A stretch of 64,000 nucleotides of DNA from Trichosphaerium sp. ATCC 40318 (Eukaryota; Protista; Tubulinea), in contig JALMLS010000520.1 of the NCBI GenBank assembly GCA_038496445.1, positions 124,001 to 188,000 on the forward strand, read 5' to 3'. The position numbers and the translations under genes are program-made. The number at the start of each line of letters is the position of its first letter. Within the stretch, counting starts at the first letter, position 1. Positions 22,869 to 56,013 of this stretch are shown here, in pieces. Below the pieces are notes generated by a model. It had not been told where the DNA came from, made no database searches, and saw only the letters and a list, made by a program, of their open reading frames with translations.

Positions 22869-23019
22869 TGTTGTTAAAGAAACGAAGGCTTTGAACAAAC
22901 GAAAAACCAAGACTTAACGGTTTGCGAACTTAAAATTGGGCTAATCCACTGAGAAAAAAAAACTATTCACAAACAAGTCGAGTCAAATTTGATCATTCGT
23001 TTGGTAAGAAATTTATTCG

Positions 23020-26000
23020 TTAATCACGAAGTGGTATATCTTCCATCTCTACATTAATTCCAAGCTTTTTGTACATAGAAGAAGCCTTTCTCACGACAGC
23101 ATCACTAGTAGCAACACTACTACTACCATCAGTGGGTTCATTAGGACCAATATTAGTGTTAGATCCTAGACCACCTCTCCTTCTTATCAAAAGAACAATG
23201 ACAACAGCAATAATGATAATAATAATCAGAGTACAAACCCCAATTATTGCACCAATAATAAGACCAACACTTGAAGATGTTTTAGTCCCTTTGATACCTG
23301 CGCTTGGAGGAGATATGCTAGAATCTCTTATACGCCATGAAGGCATTGCGCCAGCATTAACACCAGTAATTAAGCTAAAAAAAGATAAATCAGTTATTTG
23401 TGATGTTTGCACAGAAAATAAAGAGAATAAAGAAAGAATATTGTTGCCTGTACCTCAATGTCTGTGTTTGGTTGCTCATTATCTTTTGTGATATACTATC
23501 GAATATAGTCATTATATCTGAAGAACCCTCTTTGTTGAGCTTATTACTGTCAAGGGTTATAATTGCAGTGCTTTGTTTTTGTTGAACTGTAAAACTACTG
23601 CTAGACAAGTTGAAAAGCGTAGCCAACTCGTTCTTCATTACTTCTAAATCTAAAGCTTCTCCACCTTTCAAAAAGAAGCTTATTTCAACAACTGGAGCTC
23701 CTATAAACGAAAAAAAGTTAGATATGACGCAGAGAATATTACAAAGTACCTTGGTTTGTTATATTATCAACAGAAAAAGGCCAAGCAGCAACACTTATTT
23801 GAGACTTCCCACTAAAGTCTTGCATATTTGCTACCTGAGCAAAAAGCTCTTTTCCTTGTATATCACGCCAATTTGTTCCCATAAGTGGGTGAAGAGTGAT
23901 TACATTATCACCGCATTCAAATAACCAAGGAAGACCATTTAGTGTTCCTTGTGTTATATCAGCAATCAGACAACGATCAATAGCAGAAATAAATACTGTA
24001 CCTTTTACACGAATATCAACATTACCAATAATCTTTGACTGCTTACAGTCTAAGTTCTTATTGTATTCTACTGAAACTAGACCTCCAACTGACCAAGTAC
24101 CACCTTAGAAAAAGTAAGCTAATATCACACTATTTTTTAGAAGGGTACCTGTTGGTGGTGTTACAGCAACTGTAGAAAGAGTTGTTCTATCAATACTCAA
24201 AAACTTTCCAGATAATTTAGGGATTGCTGTACCCGCACCACAGAACTACAAATAAATCAGATGATGAGATTAATAGCAAAACAGTTTTAAAGATGATTCA
24301 CTATTGGTTTACTACTTTGAAACAGTTAGACACGTACAGCTTCAACTTTAATATCATATTTATCATCTTTGACTCCAGTTGTATCCCAAGTAAAGAACAT
24401 ATTACCTTGAAGATCCAAATTGTTTTTATTGGCAATACCTATTGACGTCCATGTTGACCCTTAAAAAACAAAGGTAAGCAGTTTGTTTGTTGAAAAAAGA
24501 ACCAAAACTCACCTGCAGTAATAGCAGATCGTCTGAAGAATCTAAGCTGAAGGGTAGTAAAGCTACTCCAATCAGCAGATCCAGCATTAGCTACAATCAA
24601 GTCCACTACAAGAACATTAGTAACCAGGAAAGTAGGATTAAATGTAACCATTTGGTGAGGGCGACTTGGCATCAACAAGTAATTCATCTTGTGTTCTCCA
24701 AACCATAGAAACACATGGCTTTTTCCATTCAACATCGAATGTGAGCTTGGACATGATTGGTTCTCTTGGTAGAGAATCTCCCTGCCAAGCTTCAAGTTCA
24801 CACTTTGTAGCGAACCACAACTCGAACTGATACTTATATATCTCTTGGAGCGATCGCTGTGCAGTGATTGTATTGATCACAGGTTTTCCTGGCTCAAGTG
24901 TAAAATCTAATGGCCAACCAACGCTTCCAGCTTGTGTTTGGCCAATATTGAGGCCGCCAAGATCCTTAGAGCCATTGAACGTCATTGTGTATGTGACTTC
25001 TACACGGTGTTATCAGGTACAACTTAAAGGATCATACTATCAGCTGTTGGACTATCATTGATTAATTCTATTCGCCAAAATGCTACAGTATCAACAGTGT
25101 CATCGTCAATATACTGGTATTGCGCTTGGCCTGGTGCAAACCTCATGACTGGTTTGTAAATACTTGCAGTGTCTACAACAAAATGTAAATCATTCGAGCA
25201 AACAAAATTGATGTGTACTTAATTCGTGAGGACAAGAAGACTCTCCTGATATGGTATTGAACACTGGTGTTCCATAAACTGGATCTAGAAGTAATATAAG
25301 TTTGAACTACACGAGAAAGAGTTTAGACTTTTGAACGCACCATATTTGACACCAACAACAAATGAATCTCCAAACTGTGGATCTCCAAGATGATAAGATA
25401 TTGCTGTAGCGTTAGACTTGGTAGAACTGGAAGAGCGTCCAAAGTCCATTGACGCTTTAAAGAACGTTTGCGACTCAAACTGCGAAATGTTAGTTACCAC
25501 TTTCTAATCACGTGTTTGACATTACCTGATTGAAATTCGTCTCAAACTTTGTTGATAAGCCAACAGAGTTTTCAACAACCATATCAAATTCAAAAGATTG
25601 AGAAGATGTACTAGGAGATAGATTAAAATAGATCAATATCTCGCAAATTTGAACCTTGAAAATACTGCTTCACTGTCAACGCCCACACCACCTGAGAATG
25701 CAACTGAAGGTTTTGAAAATGTAGCCTTTGAAACGGGTAATTAGGGAGAGTATTAAAGAGCGGTGTTTTGGTACTTACGATTTGGGCAAAGAAAGAGGTG
25801 AGATCTGATTGTAAACCTGAAAACTCAGCAATCATTGTATTCAGCAACCCTTCAATGTATGCTTTAGGATCATTTGTACCACTCAAACTTGGATTCTTCA
25901 TGACGTCAGTGATTGTATTTAGTCTTTGGAAGAAAAGAGTCAAACTTGCAGCAACAGGCACTAAAAGATGTATCATCAGCTTTTGTTTAGAAGTGAATAT

Positions 26001-29000
26001 CACGTACCTACTCCAACACCTCCAGCACTTATTCCGGAAACTGTGGAAATAGTGACCAAGCTGACAGTAGCAGCAAGAGCTGTTTTATGAGAATCGACCC
26101 ATGCTGCGTTTGATGCTTTCAACCCATCTCTTATCAAATGAAGTGTTGTGTTCAGAGTTTTGAGTGAGCTTAAAAGTTCAGCATCTGTGATAAGTATTAG
26201 TATTAATATACGAGTATCTTGAATAATGTGGTGTTTGTCATACTCGAGTTGAACCCAGAAACAGCCCTGTTTGTCAAGTTCCGCTTGTATTCAATAATTT
26301 TTCTCCAGTTGGCTGATAGGCAAGTTAGCAAACAAAATAAGAATCAACATGTTTGTACCTAAGCCTCGCTCTAATCTACTGATTGTTCCATTTGCACCCT
26401 TGTATTTTATTATATTCAGAAAGATCCTTTTGTAGTACGTACAGGTAATGCAATATCTTGTTTTGCGAGCTGTACTGCAGTTACTAAATCTGGTATTTGT
26501 TTATTGAGAATATGATTCTCTGTGTATGCATAGATTGAATCTATGTACAAACTTAACAACAATATTGAAAACCCAGAATTGTACCTTGAACAAAGCCACC
26601 CGGTTTAAATGCAATACTTCTTTGCTCTTTCAATGAACAGTTTGATGACTCGAAAGTCAGTTCCTTGGTTACTGAGTAGATGATCGTCATTGCAGCTAAA
26701 CAACTGTTAATAACTGTATAATACCACAACTATGACACTTGCCTCCAATAATGACATCACTGTCTGAACCAGCGATCCATGGATCAGTTGAAGTTGATAT
26801 TGTTTGACTTGCAGATATATCCATTGTGTAAGAGTTTTGTGTTGCATAGCCAACATTTGCGGATTGCTCTGTAGCAACACCTGAAACAAATCAGTACGTA
26901 CTTACCTTACGTTGGTTATTGATTGGTAGTGTACCTATAAATGTGGCAAACTTAAAAGCTGTTTCAATCCCAATTCCAGCGGAAAACTCAGTGTCAAGAC
27001 CAAGAAGACCAGTTGAAGATGCAAAAGCACCACTTGAGGTTTTCAAAGACATACCAACATCATAACTAATGGATGAAGAAGTTTCTAAAGAAGCGTATGA
27101 TTCACCACCTGGTGGATCTCTAAGAATGTACAGAGGAAGTGGCGATGTCTCAGAAACAAAGCTACAAAGGAATTAGACTCAAGAAAGTGACTTGGTTATA
27201 CTACGTGCTTTTGATCCAAAGCCTCTTCACCTGTAACAATCATTTCAAAAAGAAAAGTTTCAATAGGCAACAAGTCACCATTCGAAGCTTGTAGTTTGAG
27301 ATTGAACTCAATGGCTTTTAAATGGCTTCCTGAAAAGTTTGGTGCAACAGGTGTAAACCAATACGTCAATGTAGTGCTTCTTGATGCATCACGATAGAAA
27401 GTACGTGTCTGAGTGATCTTTGGTTGCTTGTTGATACCAACAGATACTCTATCATTGATATGAACAACAGAATCACTTGGACAAGGTCCAGTCGCCCAAG
27501 CGTTTTGTTTGCAAGGATAAGTCTCAGAAACACCGAGATCAAGCATGTACAACTCTGCCATTGCTCCAATGAACGGTTTACTCTGAATAGGCCAAGCTTA
27601 ATGCGCAAAGGTTAGGTACTAACAACAACATACAAGTGACGTACAGACAGAAATGATATTACCGAGTGTATCTCTTACATCGCAAGTCGGTTGTTTCAAG
27701 TTTGTTGAAAGTAAAGTGAGTTCGATGTTCTTGTTAACAAATCGGTATTTGATTTCTTTTGTCTAAAAACAAATGGTTTAGTAAAGACACTTTTGTTTGT
27801 GTCTTACTTTGTCAAGAGTCATATTAAAGTTTAAGACACCCTGTGTTTGCATGGAGTCATGTACAAGAGTTGCCCATGTCGCTTTATCAGGACCATCAAT
27901 CCAATCTGCTGACCAAGTATTAAAGTCATTTTCAAGCTCCATTATCAGTGGAACGGATGGTAAGTTAACCTACAATGAAAAAACCGTTAAACTGATTCAA
28001 CAAAAACGGAAAATGATTGATCTTTTGTAAAGAAAAGGACGATTATGTGAATAAAGTTAAGCGTACCATTGTTGGAACTGCGCCAATTGTAATCTGATGT
28101 TGTACAGATGCAGGACAAGAAGCGTATTTAATCTTGAGTTTAATCTTGCCAATGTCATTACAAGAACAAGCATCATATGATCCAGCAACAAATGAAGTAC
28201 TTGTTTCTGTTGTTGTTGTATCTTCAAAGTCACTAGCAAATGTGTAAATACGATGATGCAACTTTAATTTCTCATACGCTGTAATATCATTCAACACAGA
28301 TAATGTCCTTGTTGGTGGAGAGAAAGTATGATTTGCCAATTTCACAGTGACATCATGAACACCAGCAGATACTTACAATAAACGTGAGCAACACAAACAT
28401 TCATTTACTGAATAAGACATACCTGCGACAACATAAGATCCTTGAGCATCTGTTGAACCAAGTAACGATCCATCAACATAAACGATAGCATGTTCAACAC
28501 CACACGATGTTCCAGGTATTGTTACCTTGGTTTAGTTTATCAGCACACATGTTACAACAAAGAGTTTAAGCGTACTCTACCACTTATCGCAATTGCCGAA
28601 ACATCAATGAAAGAAAGATCTGTTTGTTGTAAAAATGTTGTTTGTTTTATCACAGGTGAAGTTTCAGCCTGAACTGTAAAGTTATGATCTAGAACAAAAT
28701 TTGTTAACAAACTTTCTTTTAGTATCAAAAAGAGACTTACATTTTATTCCATCAAAGTACTCCGCTTCTAGTTTAACATCCAAAGTGTTTCCACCTTGGA
28801 TACCAGGATGATCACCAGGCACGACAAACTCAAGGGTGTAGAATCCATTTGCAATTGTTGCTACAGTAGAAATGAGAACGTATGTAATAATTTAACTCTA
28901 ACATACCAGTACTTGTTGTTGTAATGGAAGCACTTTGCAAAGCAAGTGTAGATGCTCTAATAGTAACACCTACAAGACCATGGTCACCTATAATATGAAG

Positions 29001-30612
29001 TTGGTTCTTACTTTTGTTCTTAAGATGTTAAATAATTTCATTTATATCTTATGACGTACTTGGAGTCTTTACTGTGCCCTTAAAACCAACAATATAGTCT
29101 ATGATGATACTATGGGTTGTTATTGAGTGCGAATTGATGACTTTCTGATACTCTATGCCATCCGTAATGGCAGCAGGAAGAAACGCTATAAAGAAAACAA
29201 ATAAGCTTCTCGTTTAAATATTATTATGCAGCGTACTCAGTTCAATTGACAAAGTATCACCAGCACTCATACGCGCTGACATTGGTTCTACATAAGCAGA
29301 GCCTTCTGAACCTGTTGCCAGAATGACCGTGTCACCAGCAACTGTACGAAGTTCTAAAAAAGTAACATCATTCAGCTTCGGTTTTAAAAGAATACACCTC
29401 GTTGGAATGATTTCTCATACCTGAGTTGATACGTGCCAAAGATCCATAGTTATTACACAATGACCGCCATGACATTTGTATTTGATTTCGTGAAAGTGTT
29501 ACAACAAAATTATCAAAGAGAGGTCGATTTCTTTCAAATCCCAAACAAATCTCATTTCCAGCTGGTGCGTTACACAAGTAAACACAGTCGCAAGTAATAT
29601 CACTTCCATCAAACCCAACTGATAATTGAGATAATCTAGACTCTGGACCAACACAAAAACGTGCTGTAGGAGCACCAGTAACAGTGGGGACAGTAAACCT
29701 TTTAATCAAAGTTAGATTTCAAGTGGTTTTTAACAATACAGCAGTACGTACTCTTCACATGTTTGTGTGAGAACTGTTTGATGAGTAAATGGTTCTGGAG
29801 TGTTGTAAGTAAATGTTGTAAATCTGTTCGGAGGATAGAGTCGCGGACAAGTGTATGCTATTTAAGACAAAGACAGTAAGTAAACGATTATCAACTTTTT
29901 CTTGTTCATTGCCTGTGCATGTATCTGGCGCATTATCACCTCCTGCAGTTCTACGATACCCTGGCAGACATGTTTCACAATCATAGAAAAATGATCCAAC
30001 CACTTGACCTGCACGAGAGGTTAGAAATTGAGAAAGGAAGAAAAAAAACAATTGTAAAGCGGTTTACGTGTACATACATAAACATCTTTCAGAAACGGGC
30101 TTAGAGGTATCTTCAAAACATGCAGCAGACTAAGAAAAAAACATGAGTAAAGAACGTGAAGTTACGCAAAGCTAAAAACCTCAGCGTACTCTCCCTGGCA
30201 TATCAGCTACGCGCGTAGCACATGCATTATTATCGAATGGCACGTAGCGCACCCAATATGAACTATAGCGACAATCTTTACAAGAATTCACCCTTGTATC
30301 GAATCAGGTACAATGACCCGGGTCACAAGAAATCAAAATTATTTTCAATGATCTTCGTTTACGCGTTCAATCCAAGCGTCAAAAACAAGTTCAGTAACGT
30401 ACAAGCAAAATCCAACATAGTTAGCGTTGAAAGGATAAGGAATAGGAGATTTTGGTATGAACGAGGGCCACCGGTTAGTGTCGGGGTAGTATCGATAGCC
30501 AAACACGCCAACAGCCAACATCAAAGCAATAAACGCTGAAAAACAATTTGTAAAGTGTATTCATGTTATATTCTTACGCACCTTTGAACATCCCTACGCG
30601 AAGCAAAGCCAT
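23020..30612 (-). CDS. Very large multi-exon type I membrane/surface protein, copy A
   Basis: Signal peptide MALLRVGMFKAFIALMLAVGVFG (ATG 30612). Cys-rich segment CETCLPGYRR, beta-sandwich/carboxypeptidase-regulatory-like repeats, LYILRDPPGGESYASLE and YHLGDPQFGDSFVVGVKYDPVYGTPVF. A single TM (VGLIIGAIIGVCTLIIIIIIAVVIVLLI-RRR) precedes a short tail. Confidence 0.8.
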
Positions 30613-31585: not shown

Positions 31586-32398
31586 ATGAAGAAACAACAG
31601 AAAAACGCAGTTCTGAGCCCAGCTCCAGAATTACCAAATGAAATCACCGCTGGGATACTCTCCAATACTTCAAGAAAAGTTTGTCAAATATGCAGGCGTG
31701 TTTCTAAGCTTTGGAAAGATATATTAGATACCAACGTAATCCCTAACAAGCCTGGTATCGTTTTTTACGTTGAGGGTATGAAAATAACAAGTACTGGTGG
31801 TACAAATGACAGGCCTCTTAACTTCGAATCCATTCTTGGCGTATACCGGTCGTACAAACCTGCTTTGCTTTCGGCAATAGAAGCAGTTGAAGAATACGTC
31901 GACATTGAAGAAGAAGAAAGTGATAGCAAAAAGAAAGAAGCGTCAGACGAGGAAGACGATGTGTATGTGTCCAAGGAGAGAAAGAAACTTTGTTTGTTAC
32001 ATAACAAACAGAAAGAGTGGGGATTGTGGTGCAGCGTTGAAATCAAAACCTGTGATGTTAAGCAATCTGTATTGGATGGAGAAAGTCATATCTTTTTGGT
32101 TTGCAGTTTAAAATATCAGAAAGATACGTATTGTGACAGATATTGTGAGCTATTGGGCGCTTACACGGATGAATTCAAAGCATATGATTGTGGTATTGAG
32201 TATATGAAACAGGAGCTAGAAGAGAGCGATTCAGACGATGACGATGATGACGAAAGTGAGTCGTGTGCAGAGCAAATGTTCAGGTACCTTAAAGAAAAGT
32301 ACGATAACGATATGTGTTGGAGCGATAGGGATTTTGATGATGTTCCAGAAAATGCACGTTGTTTGAGCATTAAAAAAATGAAGATTCGAGAAGAATGA
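31586..32398 (+). CDS. F-box protein with acidic tracts (intronless), in the spacer between the inverted paralogs
   Basis: 270-aa ORF with F-box PELPNEITAGILSN..CRRVSKLWKDIL and D/E-rich stretches. Confidence 0.8.
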   Translation: MKKQQKNAVLSPAPELPNEITAGILSNTSRKVCQICRRVSKLWKDILDTNVIPNKPGIVFYVEGMKITSTGGTNDRPLNFESILGVYRSYKPALLSAIEAVEEYVDIEEEESDSKKKEASDEEDDVYVSKERKKLCLLHNKQKEWGLWCSVEIKTCDVKQSVLDGESHIFLVCSLKYQKDTYCDRYCELLGAYTDEFKAYDCGIEYMKQELEESDSDDDDDDESESCAEQMFRYLKEKYDNDMCWSDRDFDDVPENARCLSIKKMKIREE

Positions 32399-33128: not shown

Positions 33129-36100
33129 ATGACACATGTATTAAAAGGTACAAAAAAAAGACTGAACTATATCCCGTATTTATTGTTTTTACTAGTTTAC
33201 ATCGTGCTGACATTGGCTGTTGCTGGCACGTTTGCCTATCTATACTACCCCGACATTGATCGGTGGCCCTCCATCATACCAAAATCTCCTATTGCTTACC
33301 CTTTCAACGCTAACTATCTTGATACATGCTTGTACGTCGCTTCATCGTTGTGAAAATCTTGTGATTGGAAACAGTATTTTCAAAGCACCGTGATGGTTTC
33401 ACTACATCCGCTGTTCCGCTGTTTTTCTGACTCGATTAAGGGTGGATAAGTGCAGAGCTTGTCGCTATGATAATTGGGTACGCTATATACCGTTCGATAA
33501 CAACCGATGCGCTACACGCCAATCTGTTATGCCAGGGAGAGTACGTTCTATTTTTCACGCATTTTCTCGAGCTTTACAGATTTTTTAGTCTGCTCATTGT
33601 ATTGAACATCCAAGTGTGCCAGTTTCTCAGAGATGTCAATGTATGTTATTGTCTTTTTTCGTTTTCTTCTGACTCCCGCACAGGTGCAGTGCTAGGATCG
33701 TTCTTTTATGACTGCGAAACATGTCTACCAGGGTATCGTAGAACTGCAGGAGGTGATAATGCGCCAGATACATGCACAGGTAACGAACAAGAAAAAGGTG
33801 ATAATCGTTTTACTTACTATCCTCGGTTTAAACAGTGTACACTTGTCCGCGACTCTATCCTCCAAACAGATTTACAACATTTACTTACAGCAATCCAGAA
33901 CCGTTCTTTTATTATACAATTCTCACACAAACATGTGAACAGTACGTACTGCTTTATTATTAAAAACCACTTGAAATCTAAGTATGATTAAAAGGTTTAC
34001 TGTCCCCACTGTTACTGGTGCTCCTACAGCACGTTTTTGTGTTGGTCCAGAGTCTAGATTATCTCAATTATCAGTTGGGTTCACTGGAAGTGACCTTGCT
34101 TGTAACTGTGTTTACTTGTGTAATGCACCAGCTGGAAATGAGATTTGTTTGGGCTTTGAAAGAAATCGACCTCTCTTTGATAATTTTGTTGTAACACTTT
34201 CACGAAATCAAATACAAATGTCATGGCGGTCATTGTGCAATAACTATGGATCTTTGGCACGTATCAACTCAGGTATGAGAAATCATTCCAACGAGCTGTA
34301 TTCTTTTAAAACCGAAGCTGAATGATTTTACTTTTTTAGAACTTCGTACAGTTGCTGGTGACACGGTCATTCTGGCAACAGGTTCAGAAGGATCTGCTTA
34401 TGTAGAACCAATGTCAGCGCGTATGAGTGCTGGTGATACTCTTACGGTTGAACTAAGTACGCTATTGTTTAGAAGGAAAATACTTATTGTGTGATAGCGT
34501 TTCTTCCTGCTGCCATTAAGGACGGCCTAGAATATCAGAAAGTAATTAATTCGCATTCAAAAACAACCCATAGTATTATTATAGACTATATAGTTGCTTT
34601 TAAGGGCACAGTAAAGACTCCAAGTACGTTATGCACAACCTACGTACCTCCTTCGAAAAAAGTAAGAACCAACTTCATATTATAGGTGATCATGGTCTTG
34701 TTGGTGTTACTATTAAAGCATCTACGTTAATTTCACAACATCCTTCTATTACAACAGCGAGTACTTGTACGTTGAAGAAGAGGTGGAACAGAATACAAAT
34801 TCTTACGGTTTTTTTGCTAGTAACAACTGCAAATGGATTGTACACCCTTGAGTTTGTCGTGCCTGGTGATCATCCTGGTATCCAAGGTGGAAACACTTTG
34901 GATGTTAAACTAGAAGCAGAGTACTTTGATGGAACAAAGTGTAAGTCTCTTTCGATACTAAGAAGGATGTTAGTTGACTTATTTCTAGATCATAACTTTA
35001 CAGTTCAGGCTGAAACTTCACCTGTGATAAAACAAACAACATTTTTACAACAAACAGATCTTTCTTTCATTGATGTTTCGGCAATTGCAATAAGTGGTAG
35101 AGTACGCTTAAACTCTTTGTTGTAATATATGTGCTGATAAACTGAACCAAGGTAACAATACCTGGAACATCGTGTGGTGTTGAACATGCTCTCGTTTATG
35201 TTGATGGAGCTTTACTTGGTACAACAGATGCTCAAGGATCTTATGTTGTCGCAGGTATGTCTTATTCAGTAAATGAATGTTTGTGTTGCTCACACGTTTA
35301 TTGTAAGTATCTGCTGGTGTTCATGATGTCACTGTGAAATTGGCAAATCATACATTCTCTCCACCAACAAGGACATTATCTGTGTTGAATGATATTACAG
35401 CGTATGAGAAATTAAAGTTGCGCCACCATATTTACACATTTACTAGTGACTTTGAAGATACAACAACAACAGAAACAAGTATTTCATTTGTTGCTGGATC
35501 ATATGATGCTTGTTCTTGTAATGACATTGGTAAGATTAAACTCAAGATTAAATACGCTTCTTGTCCTGCATCTGTACAACATCAGATTACAATTGGCGCA
35601 GTTCCAACAATGGTACGCTTAACTTTATTCACATAATCGTCCTTTTCTTTACAAAAGATCAATCATTTTCCGTTTTTGTTTGAATCAGTTTAACGGTTTT
35701 TTCATTGTAGGTTAACTTACCATCCGTTCCACTGATAATGGAGCTTGAAAATGACTTTAATACTTGGTCAGCAGATTGGATTGATGGTCCTGATAAAGCG
35801 ACATGGGCAACTCTTGTACATGACTCCATGCAAACACAGGGTGTCTTAAACTTTAATATGACTCTTGACAAAGTAATACACAAACAAAAGTGTCTTTACT
35901 AAACCATTTGTTTTTAGACAAAAGAAATCAAATACCGATTTGTTAACAAGAACATTGAACTCACTTTACTTTCAACAAACTTGAAACAACCGACTTGTGA
36001 TGTTAGGAATACACTTGGTAATATCATTTCTGTCTGTACGTCACTTGTATCTTGTTTGTTAGTACCTAACCTTTGCGTATTAAGCTTGGCCTCCTCAGAG

Positions 36101-39100
36101 TAAACCGTTCATTGGAGCAATGGCAGAGTTGTACATGCTTGATCTCGGTGTTTCTGAGACTTATCCTTGCAAACAAAACGCTTGGGCGACTGAACCTTGT
36201 CCAAGTGATTCTGTTGTTCATATCAATGATAGAGTATCTGTTGGTATCAACAAGCAACCAAAGATCACTCAGACACGTACTTTCTATCGTGATGCATCAA
36301 GAAGCACTACATTGACGTATTGGTTTACACCTGTTGCACCAAACTTTTCAGGAAGCCATTTAAAAGCCATTGAGTTCAATCTCAAACTACAAGCTTCGAA
36401 TGGTGACTTGTTGCCTATTGAAACTTTTCTTTTTGAAATGATTGTTACAGGTGAAGAGGCTTTAGATCAAAAGCACGTAGTATAAACAAGTCACTTTCTT
36501 GAGTCTAATTCCTTTGTAGCTTTGTTTCTGAGACATCGCCACTTCCTCTGTACATTCTTAGAGATCCACCAGGTGGTGAATCATACGCTTCTTTAGAAAC
36601 TTCTTCATCTATTAGTTATGATGTTGGTATGTCTTTGAAAACCTCAAGTGGTGCTTTTGCATCTTCAACTGGTCTTCTTGGTCTTGACACTGAGTTTTCC
36701 GCTGGAATTGGAATTGAGACAGCTTTTAAGTTTGCCACATTTATAGGTACACTATCAATCAATAAACAACGTAAGGTAGTGATACGTACTGATTTTGTTT
36801 CAGGTGTTGCTACAGAGCAATCCGCAAATGTTGGCTATGCAACACAAAACTCGTACACAATGGATATATCTGCAAGTCAAACAATATCAACTTCAACTGA
36901 TCCATGGATCGCCGGTTCAGACAGTGATGTCATTGTTGGAGGCAAGTATTGTGGTTGGGTTAATATACAGTTATTAACGGTTGTTTAGCTGCAATGACGA
37001 TCATCTACTCAGTAACCAAGGAACTGACTTTCGAGTCATCAAACTGTTCATTGAAAGAGCAAAGAAGTATTGCATTTAAACCGGGTGGCTTTGTTCAAGG
37101 TACAATTCTGGGTTTTCAATATTGTTGTTAAGTTTGTACATAGATTCAATCTATGCTTACACAGAGAATCATATTCTCAATAAACAAATACCAGATTTAG
37201 TGACTGCAGTACAACTCGCTAAACAAGATATTGCATTACCTGTACGTACTGAGAAAGAGTAAGTTCCTGAATTTAATTAAATACAAGGGTGTAAACGCAA
37301 CAATCAGTAGATTAGAGCGAGGCTTAGGTACAAACATGTTGATGTTTCTTTTACTTATTTGCCTATCAGCCAACTGGAGAAAAATTATTGAATACAAGCG
37401 GAACTTGACAAACAGGGCTGTTTCTGGGTTCAACTCGAGTATGCCAAACACCACATTATTCAAGATACTCGTATATTAATACTAATACTTATTACAGATG
37501 CTGAACTTTTAAGCTCACTTAAGACTCTGAACACAACACTTCATTTGATAAGAGATGGATTGAAAGCATCAAACGCAGCATGGGTTGATTCTCATAAAAC
37601 AGCTCTTGCTGCTACTGTCAGCTTGGTCACTATTTCCACAGTTTCTGGAATAAGTGCTGGAGGTGTTGGAGTAGGTACGTGATATTCGCTTCTAAACAAA
37701 AGCTGATGATACACCTTTTAGTGCCTGTTGCTGCAAGTTTGACTCAATTCTTTCAAAGACTAAATACAATCACTGACGTCATGAAGAATCCGAGTTTGAG
37801 TGGTACAACTGATCCTAAAGCATACATTGAAGGGTTGCTGAATACAATGATTGCTGAGTTTTCAGGTTTACAATCAGATCTCACCTCTTTCTTTGCTCAA
37901 ATTGTAAGTACTGAAACATCGCTCTTTAAAACTCTTCCTAATTATCGTTTCAAAGGCTACATTTTCAAAACCTTCAGTTGCATTCTCAGGTGGTGTGGGC
38001 GTTGACAGTGAAGCAGTATTTTCAAGGTACAAATTGCGAGATATTGATCTATTTTAATCTATCTCCTAGTACATCTTCTCAATCTTTTGAATTTGATATG
38101 GCTGTTGAAAACTCTGTTGGCTTATCAACAAAGTTTGAGACGAATTTCAATCAGGTAATGTCAAACACGTGATCAGAAAGTGGTAACTAACATTTCGCAG
38201 TTTGAGTCGCAAACGTTTTTTAAAGCGTCAATGGACTTTGGACGCTCTTCCAGTTCTACCAAGTCTAACGCTACAGCAATATCTTATCATCTTGGAGATC
38301 CACAGTTTGGAGATTCATTTGTTGTTGGTGTCAAATATGGTATGCTTCCTCCTAATATTCTTTCTTCTTTTCTCATAAATTATTACTTCTAGATCCGATT
38401 TATGGAACACCAGTATTTGATACCATATCAGGAGAGTCTTCTTGCCCGCACGAATTGAGTACATCAATTTTTTGTTTGGCTCGAATAATTTACATTTTGT
38501 TGTAGACACTGCAAGTATTTACAAACCAGTCATGAGGTTTGCACCAGGCCAAGCGCAATACCAGTATATTGACGATGACACTGTTGATACTGTAGCATTT
38601 TGGCGAATAGAATTGATCAATGATAGTCCAACAGCTGATAGTATGCATGCCTCAAACAGCTTTTGTATTACATTTTTTCTTACTGTTTTGTCTAATAGAA
38701 GTGACATACAGTATGACGTTCAATGGCTCCAGGGATCTTGGCGGCCTCAATATTGGTCAAACACAAGCTGGAAGTGTTGGTTGGCCGTTAGATTTTACAC
38801 TTGAGCCAGGAAAACCTGTGATCAATACAATCACTGCACAGCGATCGCTCCAAGAGATATACAAGTATCAATTTGAGTTGTGGTTCGCTGTAAAGTGTGA
38901 ACTTGAAGCTTGGCAGGGAGACTCTCTACCGAGGGAACCAATCATGTCCAAGCTCACATTCGATGTTGAATGGAAAAAGCCATGTGTTTCTATGGTTTGG
39001 AGAACACAAGATGAATTACTTGTTGATGCCAAGTCACCAAATGGTTACATTTAATCCTACTTTCCTGGTTACTAATGTTCTTGTAGTGGACTTGATTGTA

Positions 39101-40612
39101 GCTAATGCTGGATCTCCTGATTGGAGTAGCTTTACTACCCTTCAGTTTAGGTTCTTCAGACGATCTGCTATTACTGCAGGTGAGTTTTGGTTCTTTGATA
39201 AACAAACAAAACTGACTTGCATTTTAAGGTTCATGGACGTCAATAGGTATTGCCAATAAAAACAATTTGGATCTTCAAGGTAATATGTTCTTTACTTGGG
39301 ATACAACTGGAGTCAAAGATGATAAATATGATATTAAAGTTGAAGCTGTACGTGTCTAACTGTTTCAAAGTAGTAAACCAAAAGTGAATCATCTTGAAAC
39401 TGTTTTGCTATTAATCTCATCATCTGATTTATTTGTAGTTCTGTGGTGCGGGTACAGCAATCCCTAAATTATCAGGAAAGTTTGTGAGTATTGACAGAAC
39501 AACTCTTTCTACAGTTGCTGTAACACCACCAACAGGTACCCTTCTAAAAAAAAATAGTGGATATTAGCTTATTCGTTCTAAGGTGGTACTTGGTCAGTTG
39601 GAGGATTAGTATCTGTTCAATACAATAAGAACTTGGATTGTGAACTCTCAAAGACTCTTGGTAACATTGATGTTCGTGTAAAAGGTACAACTATTGTTGG
39701 ATAGCGAATATCCTTTATTTCTTACATCTTCAAATAAGGCACAACAAATAGACTTCCATGGCTTTTTGAATGCAGCAAAGATACAATCATTCTGCATCCT
39801 CAACTAGGAACAAATTGGCGCGCTATACAAGGAAGAGAGCTTTTTGCTCAGGTAACAAGAATGCAAGATTTTGTTGGAAAGCCTCAACTAAGCGCTGCTG
39901 CGTGGTCATTTTCTGTTGATAATATAACAAACCAAGGTACTTTCTAAGATACTCGTACAGGTAACCGCTTTATCATTCTAAAACGAATTTAGGAGCACCA
40001 GTTATTGAAATAACCATTTTCTTGAAACAATCAGCAATTGTAGATTTAGAACTGATGAAGAACGAGTTGGCTATGCTTTTCAACTTGTCAATCAGTAGTT
40101 TTACTCTTCATCAAAAAGACTTTACAGCAATCATAACGCTCGAGAGTAGTAAGCTCAATGGACAAGGTTCTGATATAATGACTGTATTCGATAGTATATC
40201 ACAAAAGATAATGAGCAACCAAACACAGACATTGAGGTACAGGCAACTATATTCTTTCTTTATTATCTTTATTTTCTTCTTTTCTCAAACAACTGATTTA
40301 TCTTTTAGCTTAATTACTGGTGTTAATGCTGATGCAACGCCAACATGGCGTATGAGAAATTCTTATGTAGGTCCTGGTTCCACAGGAGGATCATCTTCAA
40401 GCGTTGGTATCATTGTTGGAGCAGTAGCCGGTATTTGTATTCTGATTGTTATTATCATTGCTGTTGTTGTCATTGTTCTTTTGATAAGAAGGAGAGGTGG
40501 TCTAGGATCTAACACTAATATTGGCCCTTCTGAAACTACAGGTGGTAATACCGCTACAGGTGGTAACGTGAGTGTACTTAGGACTTCAGCTTACGATAAA
40601 CTTGCTAAATAG
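33129..40612 (+). CDS. Very large multi-exon type I membrane/surface protein, copy B (inverted paralog of 23020-30612)
   Basis: ATG 33129. ORFs 33984-34325, 35334-35636, 36120-36485 and 38180-38392 are nearly identical to minus-strand ORFs 29368-29709, 28043-28345, 27196-27561 and 25285-25500. TM VGIIVGAVAGICILIVIIIAVVVIVLLI-RRR; stop at 40612. Confidence 0.8.
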
Positions 40613-41210
40613 CGTGCTTTGTGCATATTAATGCAAATAAACTAGCAACCAATGGTTGCCTCTTTGAAATATAAACTTGACGTGTATCTAGTGCGATTAG
40701 CACCAAGTACAAACAACGCCTTTGAATAGTGTAAAACGAAACTGCTGTTGATCAGCGATAGCAATTAACAGGTTCAATGTACTGTATTTTCCTTCTTATT
40801 TACACTTGTACACAACAATGCCACTTTTTTGAGAACCCTTCTTGTTTCCCATTGATACAATTGGATTATCATCCAACATTACCGCTCTTCCTCTCGTTTT
40901 TCATTAAAATAACTCCTCTCTTTTGCAGCCAGGGAAAAACTACCCGAGATTGCCAACAAGTGCCTTGTAATCTGCTTTTTTATACCATGAAGATAAGTGC
41001 ATTGATCTCTCAATTGCCCGTTTGCATGCCAACTCTTGTACTCTCCATTTAGTCTGCCAATGAGAAGATTGCCTGAGTCTAATAATTGGCCATTGTCATA
41101 CCACCTCTTGTACTCTCCTTGTAGTCTATCATATATGTAATTAGAGAGCTCACGCAACTGGCCATTGTCATACCACCTCTTGTATTCTCCATCTAGTTTA
41201 CCATTTGTAT

Positions 41211-43330
41211 CTCTTTCTACACCGAACAACGGAAATATCCGTTTTTTTAAAGATACAACTGTAAAAAATAAAAATTGTGACTTACCAGCGCTGAGTTGAA
41301 CTCCATTGATGCAGCAGTAGTATGTAACACTAGCAAAGACGTTTGTAGAGCATACATTCAGAATTTGAGCTTCCGTTTAAAGAAAATTTTTTTGACGGAC
41401 CTTAACCAAAAAGTCCACAAATCATCAAATGGAGCATGGAAACAGCACCTCCAGTAACACTACGGGCCCCTCCTTTGCTAGTTCAAGTGATGATGAAGAA
41501 GAAACAGAGAAAATTCCAATACAGTTTGAAAACACAAATCAAGTACTTATATAACGCTTTCTACGCACAAAAACGTAACTGAAGGAGTTTTAGGAGATTT
41601 CAGAAGAAAAAAAGTTCAAATACAAAAAACCAGGTCGGGAAGAGCGTAGCCATGTGTTGATTGATAAAGCATCCGGATTGAAGCCTTTGGATATGTTTTT
41701 GAGTTTTGTCAGTGAGCGGTATTGGAAAAAAATTGTTGTAGCCACCAATAATTATGCAAAAAAAAAGGTACATGCAACTTTGGAGTTTCACTAACACTAG
41801 TAGAAAGGAGTACAACTAGACTTGACACTGAAAGAACTAATGAGGTGGTTGGCAGCATCTATAATACTTGGTGCACATAGGATGGGTCCTAGAAAAGCAT
41901 GGCAAACAAACACTTGTTACGATATGCCAAAATTAAGACAGATCATGATTCGAAACCGCTATGAAGATATTGCACGTTGCTTACATTTACCTACCACTGG
42001 AACTAGTGATGCTGATCCATACCAAAAGATTAGAACTCTTGTTGATACATTTAGACATCAATGCATCAACAACTATCTACCACATGAAAAACTGGCATTA
42101 GACGAAGCCACTCCAGGATATGCAGGGAGAACAAAGCTGATTAAAAGAACCAAACATAAAAAGGTATCTTCCGGCTTTGACATTAAATGCGTGGTAGACT
42201 CTGAATCCAAGTACCTTGTTAATTTTTTGTTAAACAAAGAACCACATGTGTCTATTCAAGGGTTGACTCCAACAGCAAACAAAGCATATCACCTTATTTC
42301 ACAGCTTAAACAACATGGTCATGAAATTTTTATGGATAATCTGTATATGCGTCCTAGTTTAAAAGTAGCTGCCTATCAAATTGGACAATATTGCACAGGT
42401 ACATGGAGGAAAAATTATGGTGTACCAAAAGAGATTTATCGTACCAAAGAAAAAGGCAAAGAAGCCAAAGCAAAAGCAAGAGAAGTTATTCTATACAGTG
42501 CTGAACCATTAGATAATGTAACATTCATGGTTGGTCTTGGTCTTTATGACAAGCGCCCATTTTATTTTTTAACAACAGCATCATACGAGTTTGAAGAAGT
42601 TATTGGAGGCACACGACAAAAACTTAAACTTGATTGTATCCATGCTTACAACAACTACATGAATGGAGTAGATGTTTTTGATCAATACATGCAAGTAAGT
42701 GTTTACAGGCCAAGTGTTAAATGGTGGAAGCGCTTGTATGCTTGGATAATTGATGCTGCCATCATCAATTCATTCATTTTATACAAAAGTTGCCGTCGGA
42801 ATACTACCAAGTTGTCTGATTTTAAAACAACACTAGTTGATGAATTACTACAAAGGTACACATCTTTACTAGTTGATCAATTAATCAGTGTAGATTTGCG
42901 GAGTCTGATACTGATGAAGACAGCACACCAATAGTCAGTTTGAAAAAAAAAAAATATAAAACTACTACAAGTTTACCTGATTCTCGTCTAACTGCACAAC
43001 GCCACTTTCCTTCCAAAAACACTCGTAGATTGTGCATTGTGTGTAAATTAACCAAAGAAAAGGCTAAAGAAACACAATATTATTGTAAAAGCTGTAATGT
43101 GCCTCTGTGTGCTGCTCCATGTTTTATGTTGTTTCATACAAAAAAACATTGCAAATAAAAAATTTTTCCTATCATGACTATGTGCACAACTGAATTGTAG
43201 GTCAGCACTGCCTAACAGCATGTGTTTATACATCAGGGTACCTTTCATCCATTTTTTTGCAATTGGTGTTGTTAAATTTCAATTTTCAAAAAAACGGATA
43301 TATCCGTTTTTTACTCAGGGCAAGAAAGAG
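41211..43330 (+). mobile_element. Complete piggyBac-superfamily DNA transposon, 2,120 bp, imperfect TIRs, 2-bp AT target-site duplication
   Basis: Left end AT|CTCTTTCT..aacggaaatatccgttttttt; right end aaaaaaacggatatatccgtttttt..AGAAAGAG|AT. It encloses a full transposase gene and interrupts a reconstructable host ORF. Confidence 0.9.
41429..43158 (+). CDS. piggyBac-type (DDE_Tnp_1_7/PGBD-like) transposase with C-terminal Cys-rich domain, 4 exons
   Basis: ATG 41429. Introns at about 41543-41593, 41768-41803 and 42856-42893 keep the frame. Motifs PLDMFLSF..IVVATNNYA, catalytic LALDEA, IFMDNLY and YMNGVDVFDQ, KWWKRLYAWIIDAAIINSFILY, and C-terminal RRLCIVC..YYCKSCNVPLCAAPCFMLFH. Confidence 0.93.
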
Positions 43331-44117
43331 ATAGTTTGCACAAAGAGATAACAAGCCATTATTAAACCACTGTTTGTGCTCTCCATGTTTTATATCATGT
43401 TTCCAATGCTCTTGAACAACAATTTGGTTATTAGTTCTTCGCTTTTGCCATTTTCCATGCTTTTTCATCTCACAATCAAACCTTGTGTTCATCGCTGTCC
43501 TAGTAGAAAGAAGTGGATAAATTAAATACACATATCTGTCTAACTCGATGATATCAAGCTGAAGCTCAACTGGAAGGTATAATAGATGGCAATCATCAGC
43601 TTTTGCAGAAAATATGCGTTTATTGTTTGTTAGGAGATTCATTTTTCGAGACTATTTTTAAGTTGTAAATGGTGTGAAGGCACGTGTTAAATAGTAAATA
43701 TTTGGAACTTAACCTTAGCAATAAACTTAACGGTAGACAGTTATCATTCTGTGTAGCAGATAGTATCAACTTTAAGCTGTATATGAACTGTTACGACTCT
43801 AGCTTCATTTTGAGGTAAAAGTCTTTTTTTTTTGAAGTCTTGTGTTTTTGAGAATTAAGCACGTGTACTGACTTACGCAGTGGTCATTGACAATAATCCT
43901 GTAACTTCAAAACATTTGCTTTCAAGATTAATTAATAACGTGTTGTGATTGTTTCAGACGACGAAGCGTCATCTGAATACTAGTAGTTCCGCATATTGTA
44001 TCTATTGTACATAACTTATGCTGTATTTATTCAAGGCTTTTGTGTACATTACACCAGACTTTGCGAAAGTATACTGCCCTTATAGATTCGTATTAATCTT
44101 GGGAAAAAATGTATAGT

Positions 44118-47925: not shown

Positions 47926-50900
47926 TCAAAAATAAGCGCTACAAAATAGGTAGAAAAAAATCAGAAAGATAACACCCGCAGCAATTCGGCACAGGCATTT
48001 GGCGCCTTTCTTTTCTTGCTTCAGCTTCTTAAATTCTGCCTCTAGGGATTTGGCATCTTTCTTTTCTTGCTTTAGCTTCTCGACTTCTGCTTCTAGGGAT
48101 TTGACATCTTTCTTTTCTTGCTTCAGCTTCTTGACTTCTGCTTCTAGAGATTTGTTTTCTTGCTTTAGGTTCTCAACTTCTGCTTCTAGGAATTTGGCAT
48201 CTTCCTTTTCTTGCTTTAGCTTCTTGACTTCTGCTTCTAGTAATTTGGCATCTTTCTTTTCTTGCTTCAGCTTCTTCTTGATTTCTGCTCCTAGGGATTG
48301 TACTAACTTATCTGGTCTGCTTGGTTGCATAGGTTGGTTTGGTTTTGCAGCTGCCCACAATTGCCTTTGTGGAGTAAATTAGTATGCTAATTTGTGCCAA
48401 ATGTGGTACCGTTTAGTTTGGAAAGGCTCATCTGACAACTCATCAGATTCACTAGCATCTTCCTGGTTTGAAAGCCCTTTGATTTTAGCTTGTTGTTTTA
48501 TGCTTGTGGTAATCGTTGCCTTATTTAGCTTTTGGCTCGATTTTTTCTTTGCTGATTTACTTTTTTTCTGTACTGGTTTCTCTACAACCGTAATAACATA
48601 TCGTGCTACCGCTTGAACATCTAAATCAACAATAAACACCTTTAAAAATCACTTAAGACTACTACCTTGACCCACAACTAACTCATCATATTGATATTTA
48701 TCAATCTTTCCTTTTACTGCTTTTGACTTGTGATTTACCACTGCGTAATGACTTTGGTAGCCTGGTTTAATAGATTTGCCCTCAAAATTGATTGTGTCTC
48801 CGGGGTTTTCTATTACCTAGTACTGCTGTAACTAAAATGCAAGGCTGTATATAACTATATTTTCATACAGGATATACATTTCCAGGTGTAACTAGACTAA
48901 GGATGAGTGTTTTTTCACCTTGAGAGCTGTCATATTTGCAAGCATATTTGATACTGCTCTATTGTATTTTTGAGAAGAAAAAAACCAATGCGTAAATAGT
49001 ACTGTAAAGTAGATCCCTTGTCCAAAATATCCAGCATCTAATCCACATACAGTTCCAAAACCAGCTTTTACAATACTTTCAGCTGCCTTTCGGCTTGTTC
49101 CATGTACCATTAACACAACAGGTAACTAACACAATTGGTTTGTAAGGATAACAAGTAAGCAATAGTACCTCTGAAGTTGAACTGCTAAGTGTGGGTAAAG
49201 ACGAAAACCTGTCGATAATACTTTTCCTTTGAGTTCTATCCCAATCTTTTTTACAAAACAAATCAGGTAGTTCTCTAAATATGATAAGTAGTGATTTTAA
49301 TACTGAAACGTACTGGTGCCTATGGTTAAGTATTTTATTGTTCATTCCAAAGGATCGAAGTAAGACGTCATTGCAAACGAGATGTGCTGATACAACTTTG
49401 ACTTGATTGTATCCATGCATTTTTGACATTTGGTTACGAAGCAGCTCCAATTCTCTTTTGGCCACAGTGTCATTCTCATCAAAAAGGTTCAATGTTCTGA
49501 AATGAGTTGCTTTTTCAATAAAACCTCTTTAATTGTATTAGCACAAATTTAAAGACATGAACCTTAACTCGCTTTTAGATCTATCCCAACTACATGCATA
49601 GTTCAATCGTGGGTTTAAATTCCAAGAGGGTTCAGCCGTCAATCCTTATCCACAAGTTTAAAGGCTGCAAATTTATGTAACTTGTACCTGCTAAAGTATC
49701 ACTTAATACTTTATTTGGTGTGAATGACTCAATAACGTATTTGTTACTGACGACATAACTAGATCTGTTACTGACGACATAACTAGATCTGTTACTGACG
49801 ACATAACTAGATCGCTACACAAGTTAAAAGGTTGATGGTGCTATCGGATGTACCCTTTGTGCTGATAGAGTGCGATATGACCTGTCGAATTTAGCACAAT
49901 AAATACATAATTGTCTACCACCACCTGTACAAAAAGTAAACAACGTGGCTTACAAAACACATACATAGTTTTGAATTGCGAATTGAGTTCAAACACCATC
50001 CTTCTTTCGCACACAATTGAGGAATGTCAGCTTGTTTTTTAGTTCTCCACATATCGTCTGGTATATCGTACAGAATACCTTCCATTAGGTTTCCTTGTTG
50101 ACTCCAAAAACTCTATTAATGAAATAGTTAGCAATGTAATTATTGAAAGTATACTTTACCGAAGATTGCACAAACATGGGATTGTAAGTACAAATAAGTG
50201 TACAAATACCAGTTTGCATTGCAACATTAAAATAAGAACGTGTTGGCTTAAGTACGATTAGTTGACAGTTTTGAAATAACAGGCCAGCATGTACCAAGCG
50301 CTGCAACCATATTGCAAGATTGCGTCTCCATTTTGGGTTATCTACCATTGCACATGATAGCCATAGTTTGCGACTGTGTTGCTGATTGGTTGGAAAATGG
50401 GACAAAACAGTACCAAATATCTTGACATAAGCAGGAACATCATCAACCACCTTCATCAAGATTGTTTTAAACCCAAAATGTTTTTGTCTAATTGATGAGA
50501 ACTGTTTGTCATTTGTTAAAACGCAAATTGATGAGACGTGTTTATGTTGTACTAATAAAAGAGTTACGGAAGTTGTATTGTGGTTGTAATGTAGATTCAC
50601 CTGCATAATTTAAAGGTGTCATTCCTTTATTGTCTCTTGTTTCAGCATTTGCATGTAATGTAATTAAATGCTCAACAATTTTGTCATAATCGTTCATAGC
50701 TAGTTTGTGTAAATTGTATTTTCAATATACGTGTATAGGACCAGCAATTATAAGTATATTCACTGTATACTTATGACTGTACCTGCAAGGTGTAAAGCTG
50801 TCGTTCCATTATTATCTGTAGCATTGACATTTGCGCCTGCACTTGTCAATAATTTAACAATATCAGTGTATCCCACCATTGCTGTGAAGTGTAAGTAACA

Positions 50901-51721
50901 TGCACTGTATACCTATGACTGCACCTGCTATGTGTAAAGGTGTCTGTTCTTCTTCATCTGTAGCATTGATATTTGCTTTTGCACTTATCAATAATAAAAT
51001 GGTATCAATGCGTTCCTTCATTACTTTGAAGTGTAAGTAACATGCATTGTATGCTTATGATTGTACCTGCAACATGTAAAGCTGTTTTTCCATTATTATC
51101 TGTAGCATTGACATTTGCGCCTGCACTTGTCAATAATTTAACAATATCAGTGTATCCCTCCATTGCTGTGAAGTGTAAGTAACATGCACTGTATACCTAT
51201 GACTGCACCTGCTATGTGTAAAGGTGTCTGTTCTTCTTCATCTGTAGCATTGACGTTTGCACCTTCACTTATCAATAATAAAATGGTATCAATGCGTTCC
51301 TTCATTACTTTGAAGTGTAAGTAACATGCATTGTATGCTTATGATTGTACCTGCAACATGTAAAGCTGTTTTTCCATTATTATCTGTAGCATTGACATTT
51401 GCGCCTGCACATAAACACAACGATGCAATATTTGGCATATTAAAATGAGCTAAAACGGTTAAAACTCATTAAGTCATACACAAACCTGAAGACAGCATAA
51501 TTTCATTGGCTTTATCTGCTTTCTGTAGCTTCTTCTTTAGCTTACTAACTTCAAACAAATGTAAACAAAGCTACTGAGATAAACTGCACCTGTAATACTC
51601 TTGTAATTGGAATGTTGAGAGAAATATTTCAATTCACCTTGGTAATATTAATAGATATTGTATTAAACAGACATTCGTTAGTACCCTTTAATTTTTTCTT
51701 GTCTTGGCTCTCGTTTGACAT
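47926..51721 (-). CDS. Ankyrin repeats + PARP-like (HYE) ADP-ribosyltransferase + coiled-coil repeats + C-terminal TM anchor, multi-exon
   Basis: ATG 51721. About 6 ankyrin exons (GANVNATDNNGKTALHVA). Catalytic LMVHGTS..GFG..DAGYFGQGIYFT/SSIKYA..VTPGNVYP..GYQSHY..YDELVV. 17-aa repeats KSLEAEVKKLKQEKKDA and TM IAAGVIFLIFFYLF. Some internal junctions are uncertain. Confidence 0.75.
48005..48295. repeat. 51-bp coding tandem repeat (coiled coil)
   Basis: About 5 imperfect copies of ttttcttgcttcagcttcttgacttctgcttctagggatttggcatcttt encoding (K/F/S)LEAEVKKLKQEKKDA. Confidence 0.9.
49742..49813. repeat. Perfect 24-bp tandem repeat x3
   Basis: tgttactgacgacataactagatc x3; reads in frame on the minus strand as RSSYVVSN x3 right after a splice acceptor. 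Confidence 0.9.
50778..51411. repeat. 284-bp tandem repeat made of two 142-bp ankyrin exon+intron modules
   Basis: gcattgacatttgcgcctgcac recurs at 50821, 51105 and 51389. The introns are duplicated along with the exons. Confidence 0.9.
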
Positions 51722-55209: not shown

Positions 55210-56013
55210 TCATCTGCTCTTAAACGTTATTAACAAGGTACCTTTAACATTATAATTTTCCAGAGTCATTTTGTCTTCAAGTTGTCTTTTTCCACACAAA
55301 TGGAACGTGGCTGATTTAAATTTTTCAGACACGTGTTTCATCATACTGCGTACTACTTCCTCTATAGTGGTATCCCTTGAAAATTCTTTTACCCAACTGG
55401 CCCCTTCAATTTTGGAAACACAAGAGAGTAGTATTTGAAGATGTATAGTATTGTTTTGTCCCACATGATTATCTTGCTGCTTCTCACTATTTCTCTGACA
55501 TTTGTTTAAGGCATCAAGATTACTAAACTGTTGTTTTTGAAGTTGATTACTGTCTTCTTGTCTACCATTGTTGTAATTACCGCACATCTTTAATGATCCG
55601 TTACGATGCCATTCCTTACATTCACCTTCTCTTTTGTCCTTGCTGTAGGTACGTTGTACAGACAACTGTCCCCTATCATACCACTCTGAATACTCTCCTT
55701 CTAGTTCGCCGTTTACATAGTTACACTGTGCCATCAAGCCGCCGGTTTCGAACCAAAGCTTACAACCGCCGTGCTTAATACCGTGTCGCCAAGAATACCG
55801 ACATAGGAGCGCAGGAGGGTTATTTTTCCCATTAAGAAACCAGTATTTCAGCCATGTACCATGTTTATTTAGGTCAGCATCATACCTAGTTGTTTGCGCT
55901 GTATGTTTTGATAGCAGAGGCCATTTAGAATACAGTAGCTTGTCCAAATCAATAATATCAAGATGTAACTCTGTTGGAAGGTCTAGCAAGCCGCAGTACC
56001 CAGGCGCTATCAT
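55210..56013 (-). CDS. F-box + MORN-variant repeats + C-terminal ubiquitin-like domain (intronless)
   Basis: LLDLPTELHLDII; repeats such as KHGGCKLWFETG and LEGEYSEWYDRGQL; C-terminal DTTIEEVV..FHLCGKRQLEDKMTLENYNVKGTLLI resembles the ubiquitin fold. Confidence 0.8.
   Translation of the reverse strand: MIAPGYCGLLDLPTELHLDIIDLDKLLYSKWPLLSKHTAQTTRYDADLNKHGTWLKYWFLNGKNNPPALLCRYSWRHGIKHGGCKLWFETGGLMAQCNYVNGELEGEYSEWYDRGQLSVQRTYSKDKREGECKEWHRNGSLKMCGNYNNGRQEDSNQLQKQQFSNLDALNKCQRNSEKQQDNHVGQNNTIHLQILLSCVSKIEGASWVKEFSRDTTIEEVVRSMMKHVSEKFKSATFHLCGKRQLEDKMTLENYNVKGTLLITFKSR

Follow-up and report, generated by a model that had tools for sequence, protein, structure and literature searches.

A piggyBac-superfamily transposon lineage that targets TATA, probably with a 2-nt duplication

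Results

A TATA-targeting element interrupts an F-box/MORN gene

The 64-kb window, i.e. the whole stretch of Trichosphaerium DNA that we analyzed, carries a cut-and-paste DNA transposon of the piggyBac superfamily that belongs to a separate, TATA-targeting lineage. Comparison of its junctions with those of 13 related families suggests that insertion occurs through a 2-nt staggered cut of TATA (T^AT^A), which would duplicate AT; we assign this reading a probability of about 0.7. The features that underlie this conclusion are collected in Table 1.

At its left and right boundaries the element reads GTAT/CTCTTTCT and AGAAAGAG/ATAG (the slash marks the junction), with the flanking AT dinucleotides at 41209-41210 and 43331-43332, respectively, as read from the sequence. 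The perfect inverted repeat runs outward through TAT and ATA, for a total of 11 bp (41208-41218 versus 43323-43333). In a control, 11-bp perfect inverted repeats were found between random 300-nt flanks in 4.6% of trials; therefore, the terminal inverted repeats (TIRs) by themselves are weak evidence for an element. The host reading frame, the host repeat period and the 13 related families, on the other hand, make a chance reading negligible. Internal to each TIR is a palindromic repeat, which is a likely candidate for the transposase binding site. This copy of the element looks recently inserted, because its TIRs are perfect and its exons and both host halves are open, and we infer that it may be currently active. 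A scan of the 64-kb window and five related loci revealed no convincing further copies of the element or MITEs.

Table 1. Positions of the element, its transposase gene and the host gene within the window
Feature	Position	Strand	Length or evidence	Remarks
piggyBac-superfamily element	41211-43330		2,120 bp	interrupts F-box/MORN host gene
Left target remnant TAT	41208..41210	+		AT 41209-41210 = left copy of putative 2-bp duplication
Left TIR CTCTTTCT	41211..41218	+		first base is the piggyBac-type terminal C
Left subterminal palindromic repeat	41225..41248	.	24 nt	core AACGG-AAATAT-CCGTT
Transposase exon 1 (predicted)	41429..41542	+		acidic N-terminus
Intron 1 (predicted)	41543-41593		51 nt, GT-AG	alternative acceptor 41596
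Transposase exon 2 (predicted)	41594..41767	+		start of DNA-binding domain
Intron 2 (predicted)	41768-41803		36 nt, GT-AG	
Transposase exon 3	41804..42855	+	PF13843 E 4e-46	RNase H-like core
Remodelled omega loop	about 42120-42180			within transposase exon 3
Intron 3 (predicted)	42856-42893		38 nt, GT-AG	alternative acceptor 42923
Transposase exon 4 (predicted)	42894..43158	+		linker and Cys-rich domain; stop codon 43156-43158
Right subterminal palindromic repeat	43289..43312	.	24 nt	
Right TIR AGAAAGAG	43323..43330	+		last base G
Right target remnant ATA	43331..43333	+		AT 43331-43332 = right copy of putative duplication
Interrupted host gene, 5' half	43331..43642	-		F-box-like N-terminus and first MORN repeat
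Interrupted host gene, 3' half	40879..41210	-	PF07661 E 9e-15	72-nt MORN repeats
Uninterrupted host-gene paralogue	55210..56013	-		reference for empty site

The host gene fixes the net insertion at 2122 nt

The two halves of the host gene represent consecutive stretches of the uninterrupted paralogue: the 5' half matches paralogue residues 7-97 (44% identity, E 4e-23) and the 3' half aligns from residue 100 onward. MORN repeats in the host gene have a period of 72 nt, and successive copies are spaced by 72, 72 and 2194 nt, from which a net insertion of 2122 nt (2120 + 2) follows. After removal of 2122 nt, the frame across the junction had 106 open codons to one side and 109 to the other; when 2 or 4 more bases were removed, the best frame extended for 19 or 9 codons on the shorter side. 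Thus, the frame and the 72-nt period are kept by no net insertion other than 2122 nt, and a 4-bp duplication is excluded. A reading made from the sequence alone before this analysis (the sequence-only reading) had claimed that excision of the element plus one AT restores the host frame and that excision of a 4-bp duplication breaks it; the open frame, the repeat period and the match to the paralogue agree with both claims. A 4-bp duplication at this locus, a Tc1/mariner-like TA duplication (TA/TCT...AGA/TA) and a donor flap kept at the junction were each rejected, because each would need a net insertion of 2124 nt, with which neither the host frame nor the 72-nt period is kept. Two natural readings fit the observed length, namely a duplication of AT by an element of 2120 nt or the blunt insertion of a 2122-nt TC...GA element.

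The empty site used in this comparison is deduced from one locus and its paralogue. A frame test on eight related loci found no long ORF spanning the junction under any model, and a search for homologues of the host gene returned nothing at E 1e-15.

The surrounding window is eukaryotic and intron-rich, has a G+C content of about 37%, and includes F-box/LRR and F-box/MORN genes; gene architectures of this type are common both in amoebae and in the giant viruses of amoebae. Genes of this type at 2041-2907, 7345-8445, 20665-22086, 31586-32398 and 55210-56013 are intronless, and their neighbours are intron-rich. Two inverted copies of an intron-rich gene region, each ~8 kb long (about 23000-30500 versus 33200-40600, 80-99% identity), flank the F-box gene at 31586-32398. 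We also observed a tandem array with a period of 142/284 nt at 50761-51410, the minus strand of which encodes ankyrin-like fragments in shifting frames and probably carries one short intron per repeat, and a coiled-coil-like ORF composed of 42- and 51-nt tandem repeats at 47929-48378.

The transposase has a piggyBac fold and a predicted three-intron gene

The transposase was searched exon by exon, and the joined model was checked for frame only. PF13843 and PF13842 are the only families that match it, and the PIF/Harbinger-type DDE_Tnp_4 domain of ISL2EU and Spy is not among its matches. Exon 3 encodes the DDE_Tnp_1_7 RNase H-like core, in which the equivalents of D268, D346 and D447 are the codons starting at 42101, 42335 and 42671, as aligned to the piggyBac structure 6x67. 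The AlphaFold model of this exon (pLDDT 92) demonstrated the fold, matching piggyBac (6x67) with a TM score of 0.86 and piggyBat (9c0f) with a TM score of 0.79 in Foldseek. The C-terminal Cys-rich domain is found in predicted exon 4 (PF13842, E 4e-8; hhalign probability 97.5), and exon 2 matches the N-terminal region of family alignment A1 (hhalign probability 95.9, E 5e-9). The RNase H-like core with its Asp triad and the Cys-rich domain are those of the piggyBac superfamily.

Removal of three predicted GT-AG introns (51, 36 and 38 nt) yields a stop-free frame of 534 codons, or 523-533 codons with the alternative acceptors. The sequence-only reading had described an intact element with its DDD triad and Cys-rich domain in place. 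Both of the latter are present, as shown above, and the exons are open; the transposase is not a single ORF, however, and would be intact only if the three short predicted introns are spliced.

Fourteen families share the same junction

The closest relatives of the transposase, which are 30-40% identical to it, came from metagenome and Logan assemblies. We retrieved 24 related loci, and 13 further families had readable ends (14 including the window element). The junction nTAT/C...G/ATAn is common to all of these families: positions -3 to -1 are TAT and TIR position 1 is C at each of the 31 tabulated junctions. With a 2-bp duplication, the element ends are thus the C...G of piggyBac, and under blunt insertion the element would start at T rather than C. 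The base outside of TAT is variable (C 14, T 7, G 5, A 5 in 31 junctions). Left and right 4-mers were equal in none of the 11 sites with both flanks, and none of them reads TTAA, which together with a net insertion of element + 2 differs from the 4-bp TTAA duplication of canonical piggyBac elements. The sequence-only reading had named the flanks of other copies as the check on its claim, and the flanks of these related families agree with a net insertion that is not of the 4-bp TTAA type.

Because TAT was found at all 31 junctions, the target is TATA and not any AT, and AT as the whole target was rejected. As read from these junctions, the conserved target is TATA, with flanks leaning to AC-TATA-GT. 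Therefore, the earlier proposal of a 2-bp AT duplication in place of TTAA holds with respect to net length (element + 2) and needs correction with respect to the target. The accompanying argument that AT target sites would greatly outnumber TTAA sites is not upheld, since TATA is the rarer sequence in the window (274 versus 447 occurrences of TTAA).

Support that is independent of the motif came from three sources. First, an unbiased inverted-repeat search of eight loci placed the end of the repeat at TAT or no more than 3 bases outside of it. Second, both ends of each of two collapsed multicopy unitigs (L011 and L019) coincide exactly with TAT/ATA. Finally, two copies from one assembly, ERZ22157276 (L023 and L024), are 99.6% identical and diverge within a few bases beyond the junctions. 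The one-sided ends of L002, L007, L008, L012 and L013, and also L021, were located by the motif and are not independent. Ends of L005 and L015 were not recovered. One exception was found, in that the same right end is TAT (ATA) in L008:3330-3340 and TAA (TTA) in L009:2265-2275; the left end of L008 is degenerate.

A second piggyBac element lies at L024:5760-7665, ~1 kb from the TAT-ended element, which shows that both types coexist in one genome. It has a canonical Y-I-P-N-K loop and a likely TTAA/CAC end (one end only), and it likely provides a small internal control for the pairing of loop and target. At another locus, a Tc1/mariner transposase gene (L007:157-1005) lies directly upstream of a TAT-ended element for which no left end was located, and it may have inserted into that element. 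Scans of viral contigs and prokaryotic genomes gave nothing useful, and a search for related loci with the broad alignments A1 and A3 gave no usable pattern.

TAT-ended elements form one clade with an altered omega loop

A quick maximum-likelihood analysis of 156 cores gave a midpoint-rooted tree, with no named reference elements, in which every TAT-ended element that was placed fell into one clade of 48 rows (SH-aLRT 99). The L014 element is absent from this tree, and L023 and L024 are represented by the cluster member P0030. The clade retains the Asp triad, Y439 and N440, and a hydrophobic residue is retained at the V414/L416 position. In the Y283 column, 30 of 42 clade proteins have R, while 87 of 103 proteins outside of the clade have Y. 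The R275, P288, K290 and K294 columns are likewise altered across the clade. In the window protein, A, R and S stand in place of R275, Y283 and K290, respectively, and its loop so differs from the canonical TTAA-reading omega loop. The remodelled loop and the 14 families thus strengthen the initial view that this piggyBac lineage is non-canonical and differs in its target geometry.

A subgroup of the clade (P0003 and P0164, the latter from L021:461-2305) shows a faint match to the Tudor-like Pfam family PF21743, perhaps reflecting an additional N-terminal module.

Proposed mechanism of insertion

Structures of piggyBac showed that R275, Y283 and K290 of the omega loop organize the melted TTAA target, that A3 stacks on Y283, that N440 reads A, and that V414, L416 and Y439 hold the methyl group of T (Chen et al. 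2020, PMC7351741). By analogy with these structures, each 3'-G end of the element would be joined to its own strand of TATA at the position between the initial T and the following A, and the 2-nt stagger (T^AT^A) would leave AT duplicated. Provided that the terminal base of the element is G, as in other piggyBac elements, the strand-transfer product would be G-A0-T1-A2-N3, compared to G-T0-T1-A2-A3 in piggyBac. T1 and A2 would be unchanged, consistent with the conserved contacts N440 and Y439 and the hydrophobic residue at V414/L416. Positions 0 and 3, the two that depend on Y283, would differ, and Y283, on which A3 stacks in piggyBac, is lost along with R275, P288, K290 and K294. The remodelled omega loop would then alter the target as well as the distance between the two cuts, and excision would probably still proceed via a hairpin.

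Because TAT is invariant, the cut is not placeable from sequence alone, and a 2122-bp element of the same lineage, 5'-TC...GA-3', that inserts bluntly into TA^TA without duplication would leave filled and empty sites no different from those of the staggered insertion, again with 2122 nt gained on balance. Furthermore, the T beside the terminal C is as invariant as the C itself (31/31). We nevertheless consider blunt insertion unlikely, as it shifts the terminus away from the C...G that is conserved in, and needed by, piggyBac-like elements (PMC5381638, PMC10045372) and gives up the register in which T1 and A2 fit the conserved contacts of Y439 and N440. Within the TIRs of piggyBac-like elements, conservation is highest at the terminal C (PMC5381638), which favours an element end at C. 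Together, the agreement of the T1/A2 contacts and the conserved C favour AT duplication over blunt insertion. One consideration counts against a 2-nt stagger: the active sites of the piggyBac dimer are stated to mandate a 4-bp offset (Chen et al., PMC7351741), so a 2-bp offset would need a real change of architecture.

Two other explanations were weighed. The ends might include more of TAT/ATA (ATC... or TATC...), with insertion deleting 2 or 4 target bases; this is formally compatible with the data, because the palindromic target equals the outer TIR bases, but it requires new termini as well as new chemistry, to our knowledge no such target deletion occurs in piggyBac or IS4-type enzymes, and we judge it quite improbable. 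An ordinary piggyBac element that duplicated 4 bp (TTAA or a variant) and later acquired mutations in its flanks, or a chance pattern at one locus, would have precedent in single-copy elements whose non-TTAA flanks were ascribed to mutation (PMC5381638) and in the ~12% of Pokey 4-bp sites that are not TTAA (PMC3849761), yet it has hardly any remaining probability, given that it demands a net insertion of 2124 nt, incompatible with the host frame and period, that none of the 11 complete sites has equal 4-mers or TTAA, and that the same junction pattern recurs across families only 30-40% identical.

Discussion

The TATA-targeting element resembles Trichoplusia ni piggyBac and piggyBat (6x67/6x68 and 9c0f) in its fold, in the DDD triad plus D450, in Y439/N440, in the C-terminal Cys-rich domain, in the terminal C...G, and in the combination of a short TIR, subterminal repeats and a strict palindromic tetranucleotide target. 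It differs from them in that the target is TATA rather than TTAA and the net insertion is element + 2 rather than + 4; in that its omega loop lacks R275, Y283, K290 and K294; and in that its ends begin with CTC, CTT, CCT or CTG, its identity is ~20-25%, and its gene has three predicted introns.

The PHIS group offers a parallel, in that ISL2EU makes a 2-bp AT duplication and Spy inserts bluntly with no duplication. These are the same kinds of junction as in the two leading models for our element, although its transposase (PF13843, with a piggyBac fold) belongs to a different family.

Pokey of Daphnia is likewise a member of the piggyBac superfamily, and Pokey-related clades had been suggested at the outset as a possible precedent for AT-type duplications. 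This suggestion did not hold, because Pokey makes 4-bp duplications, of which 88% are TTAA and the rest TTAT, ATAA or CTAA, and it favours 28S rDNA (PMC3849761). In contrast, the element described here lacks a 4-bp duplication and resides in a protein-coding F-box/MORN gene. The non-TTAA sites of Pokey retain the middle T and A (PMC3849761), and these are the two bases that are conserved here in the strand-transfer register.

Single-copy piggyBac-like elements flanked by ATAG, TTAT, ATAT or ATAA have been reported, and the odd flanks were ascribed to mutated TTAA sites (Bouallegue et al. 2017, PMC5381638). Of the five unusual flanks in that list, four are compatible with nTAT or ATAn; in most of these five elements the 5' and 3' flanks are unequal, as observed here, and some of the elements may belong to the TATA clade. 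Furthermore, the largest mining screen kept only matches to TTAACC with no more than 2 mismatches (PMC13461360). Ends of the form CTATCT, GTATCT and ATATCT fail this filter and TTATCT passes it as a TTAA variant, so that the lineage may have been dropped or misread.

None of the papers covered by a literature search describes a TATA-targeting or 2-bp-duplicating piggyBac element. In Repbase and Dfam, piggyBacA and piggyBacX are divergent piggyBac subgroups with non-TTAA flanks, and there is about an even chance that one of them is the same lineage as the TATA clade. The clade apparently occurs in microbial eukaryotes and is known mostly from environmental sequence. Our broader interpretation, which we hold tentatively and at slightly less than even odds, is that this branch of piggyBac has so far escaped description, is widespread and has been mobile recently, and that its target (TATA) and its cut spacing (2-nt or blunt) were changed via the omega loop.

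A TTAA target with a 4-bp duplication is treated as defining for piggyBac, and cryo-EM work tied these features to seamless excision (PMC7351741); this lineage departs from that rule. If our interpretation is correct, the lineage would represent the first natural departure from the 4-nt offset that the piggyBac dimer is believed to impose and could supply transposases whose target is orthogonal to TTAA, and the gain for engineering would be a different and somewhat rarer target, not a commoner one. A clade with another target and offset makes the link among target, cut spacing and seamless excision directly testable, and it raises the questions of whether excision with a 2-nt offset is footprint-free and whether the omega loop is enough to set both target and spacing. 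Altogether, the cutting geometry of the piggyBac family may be more flexible than is usually stated.
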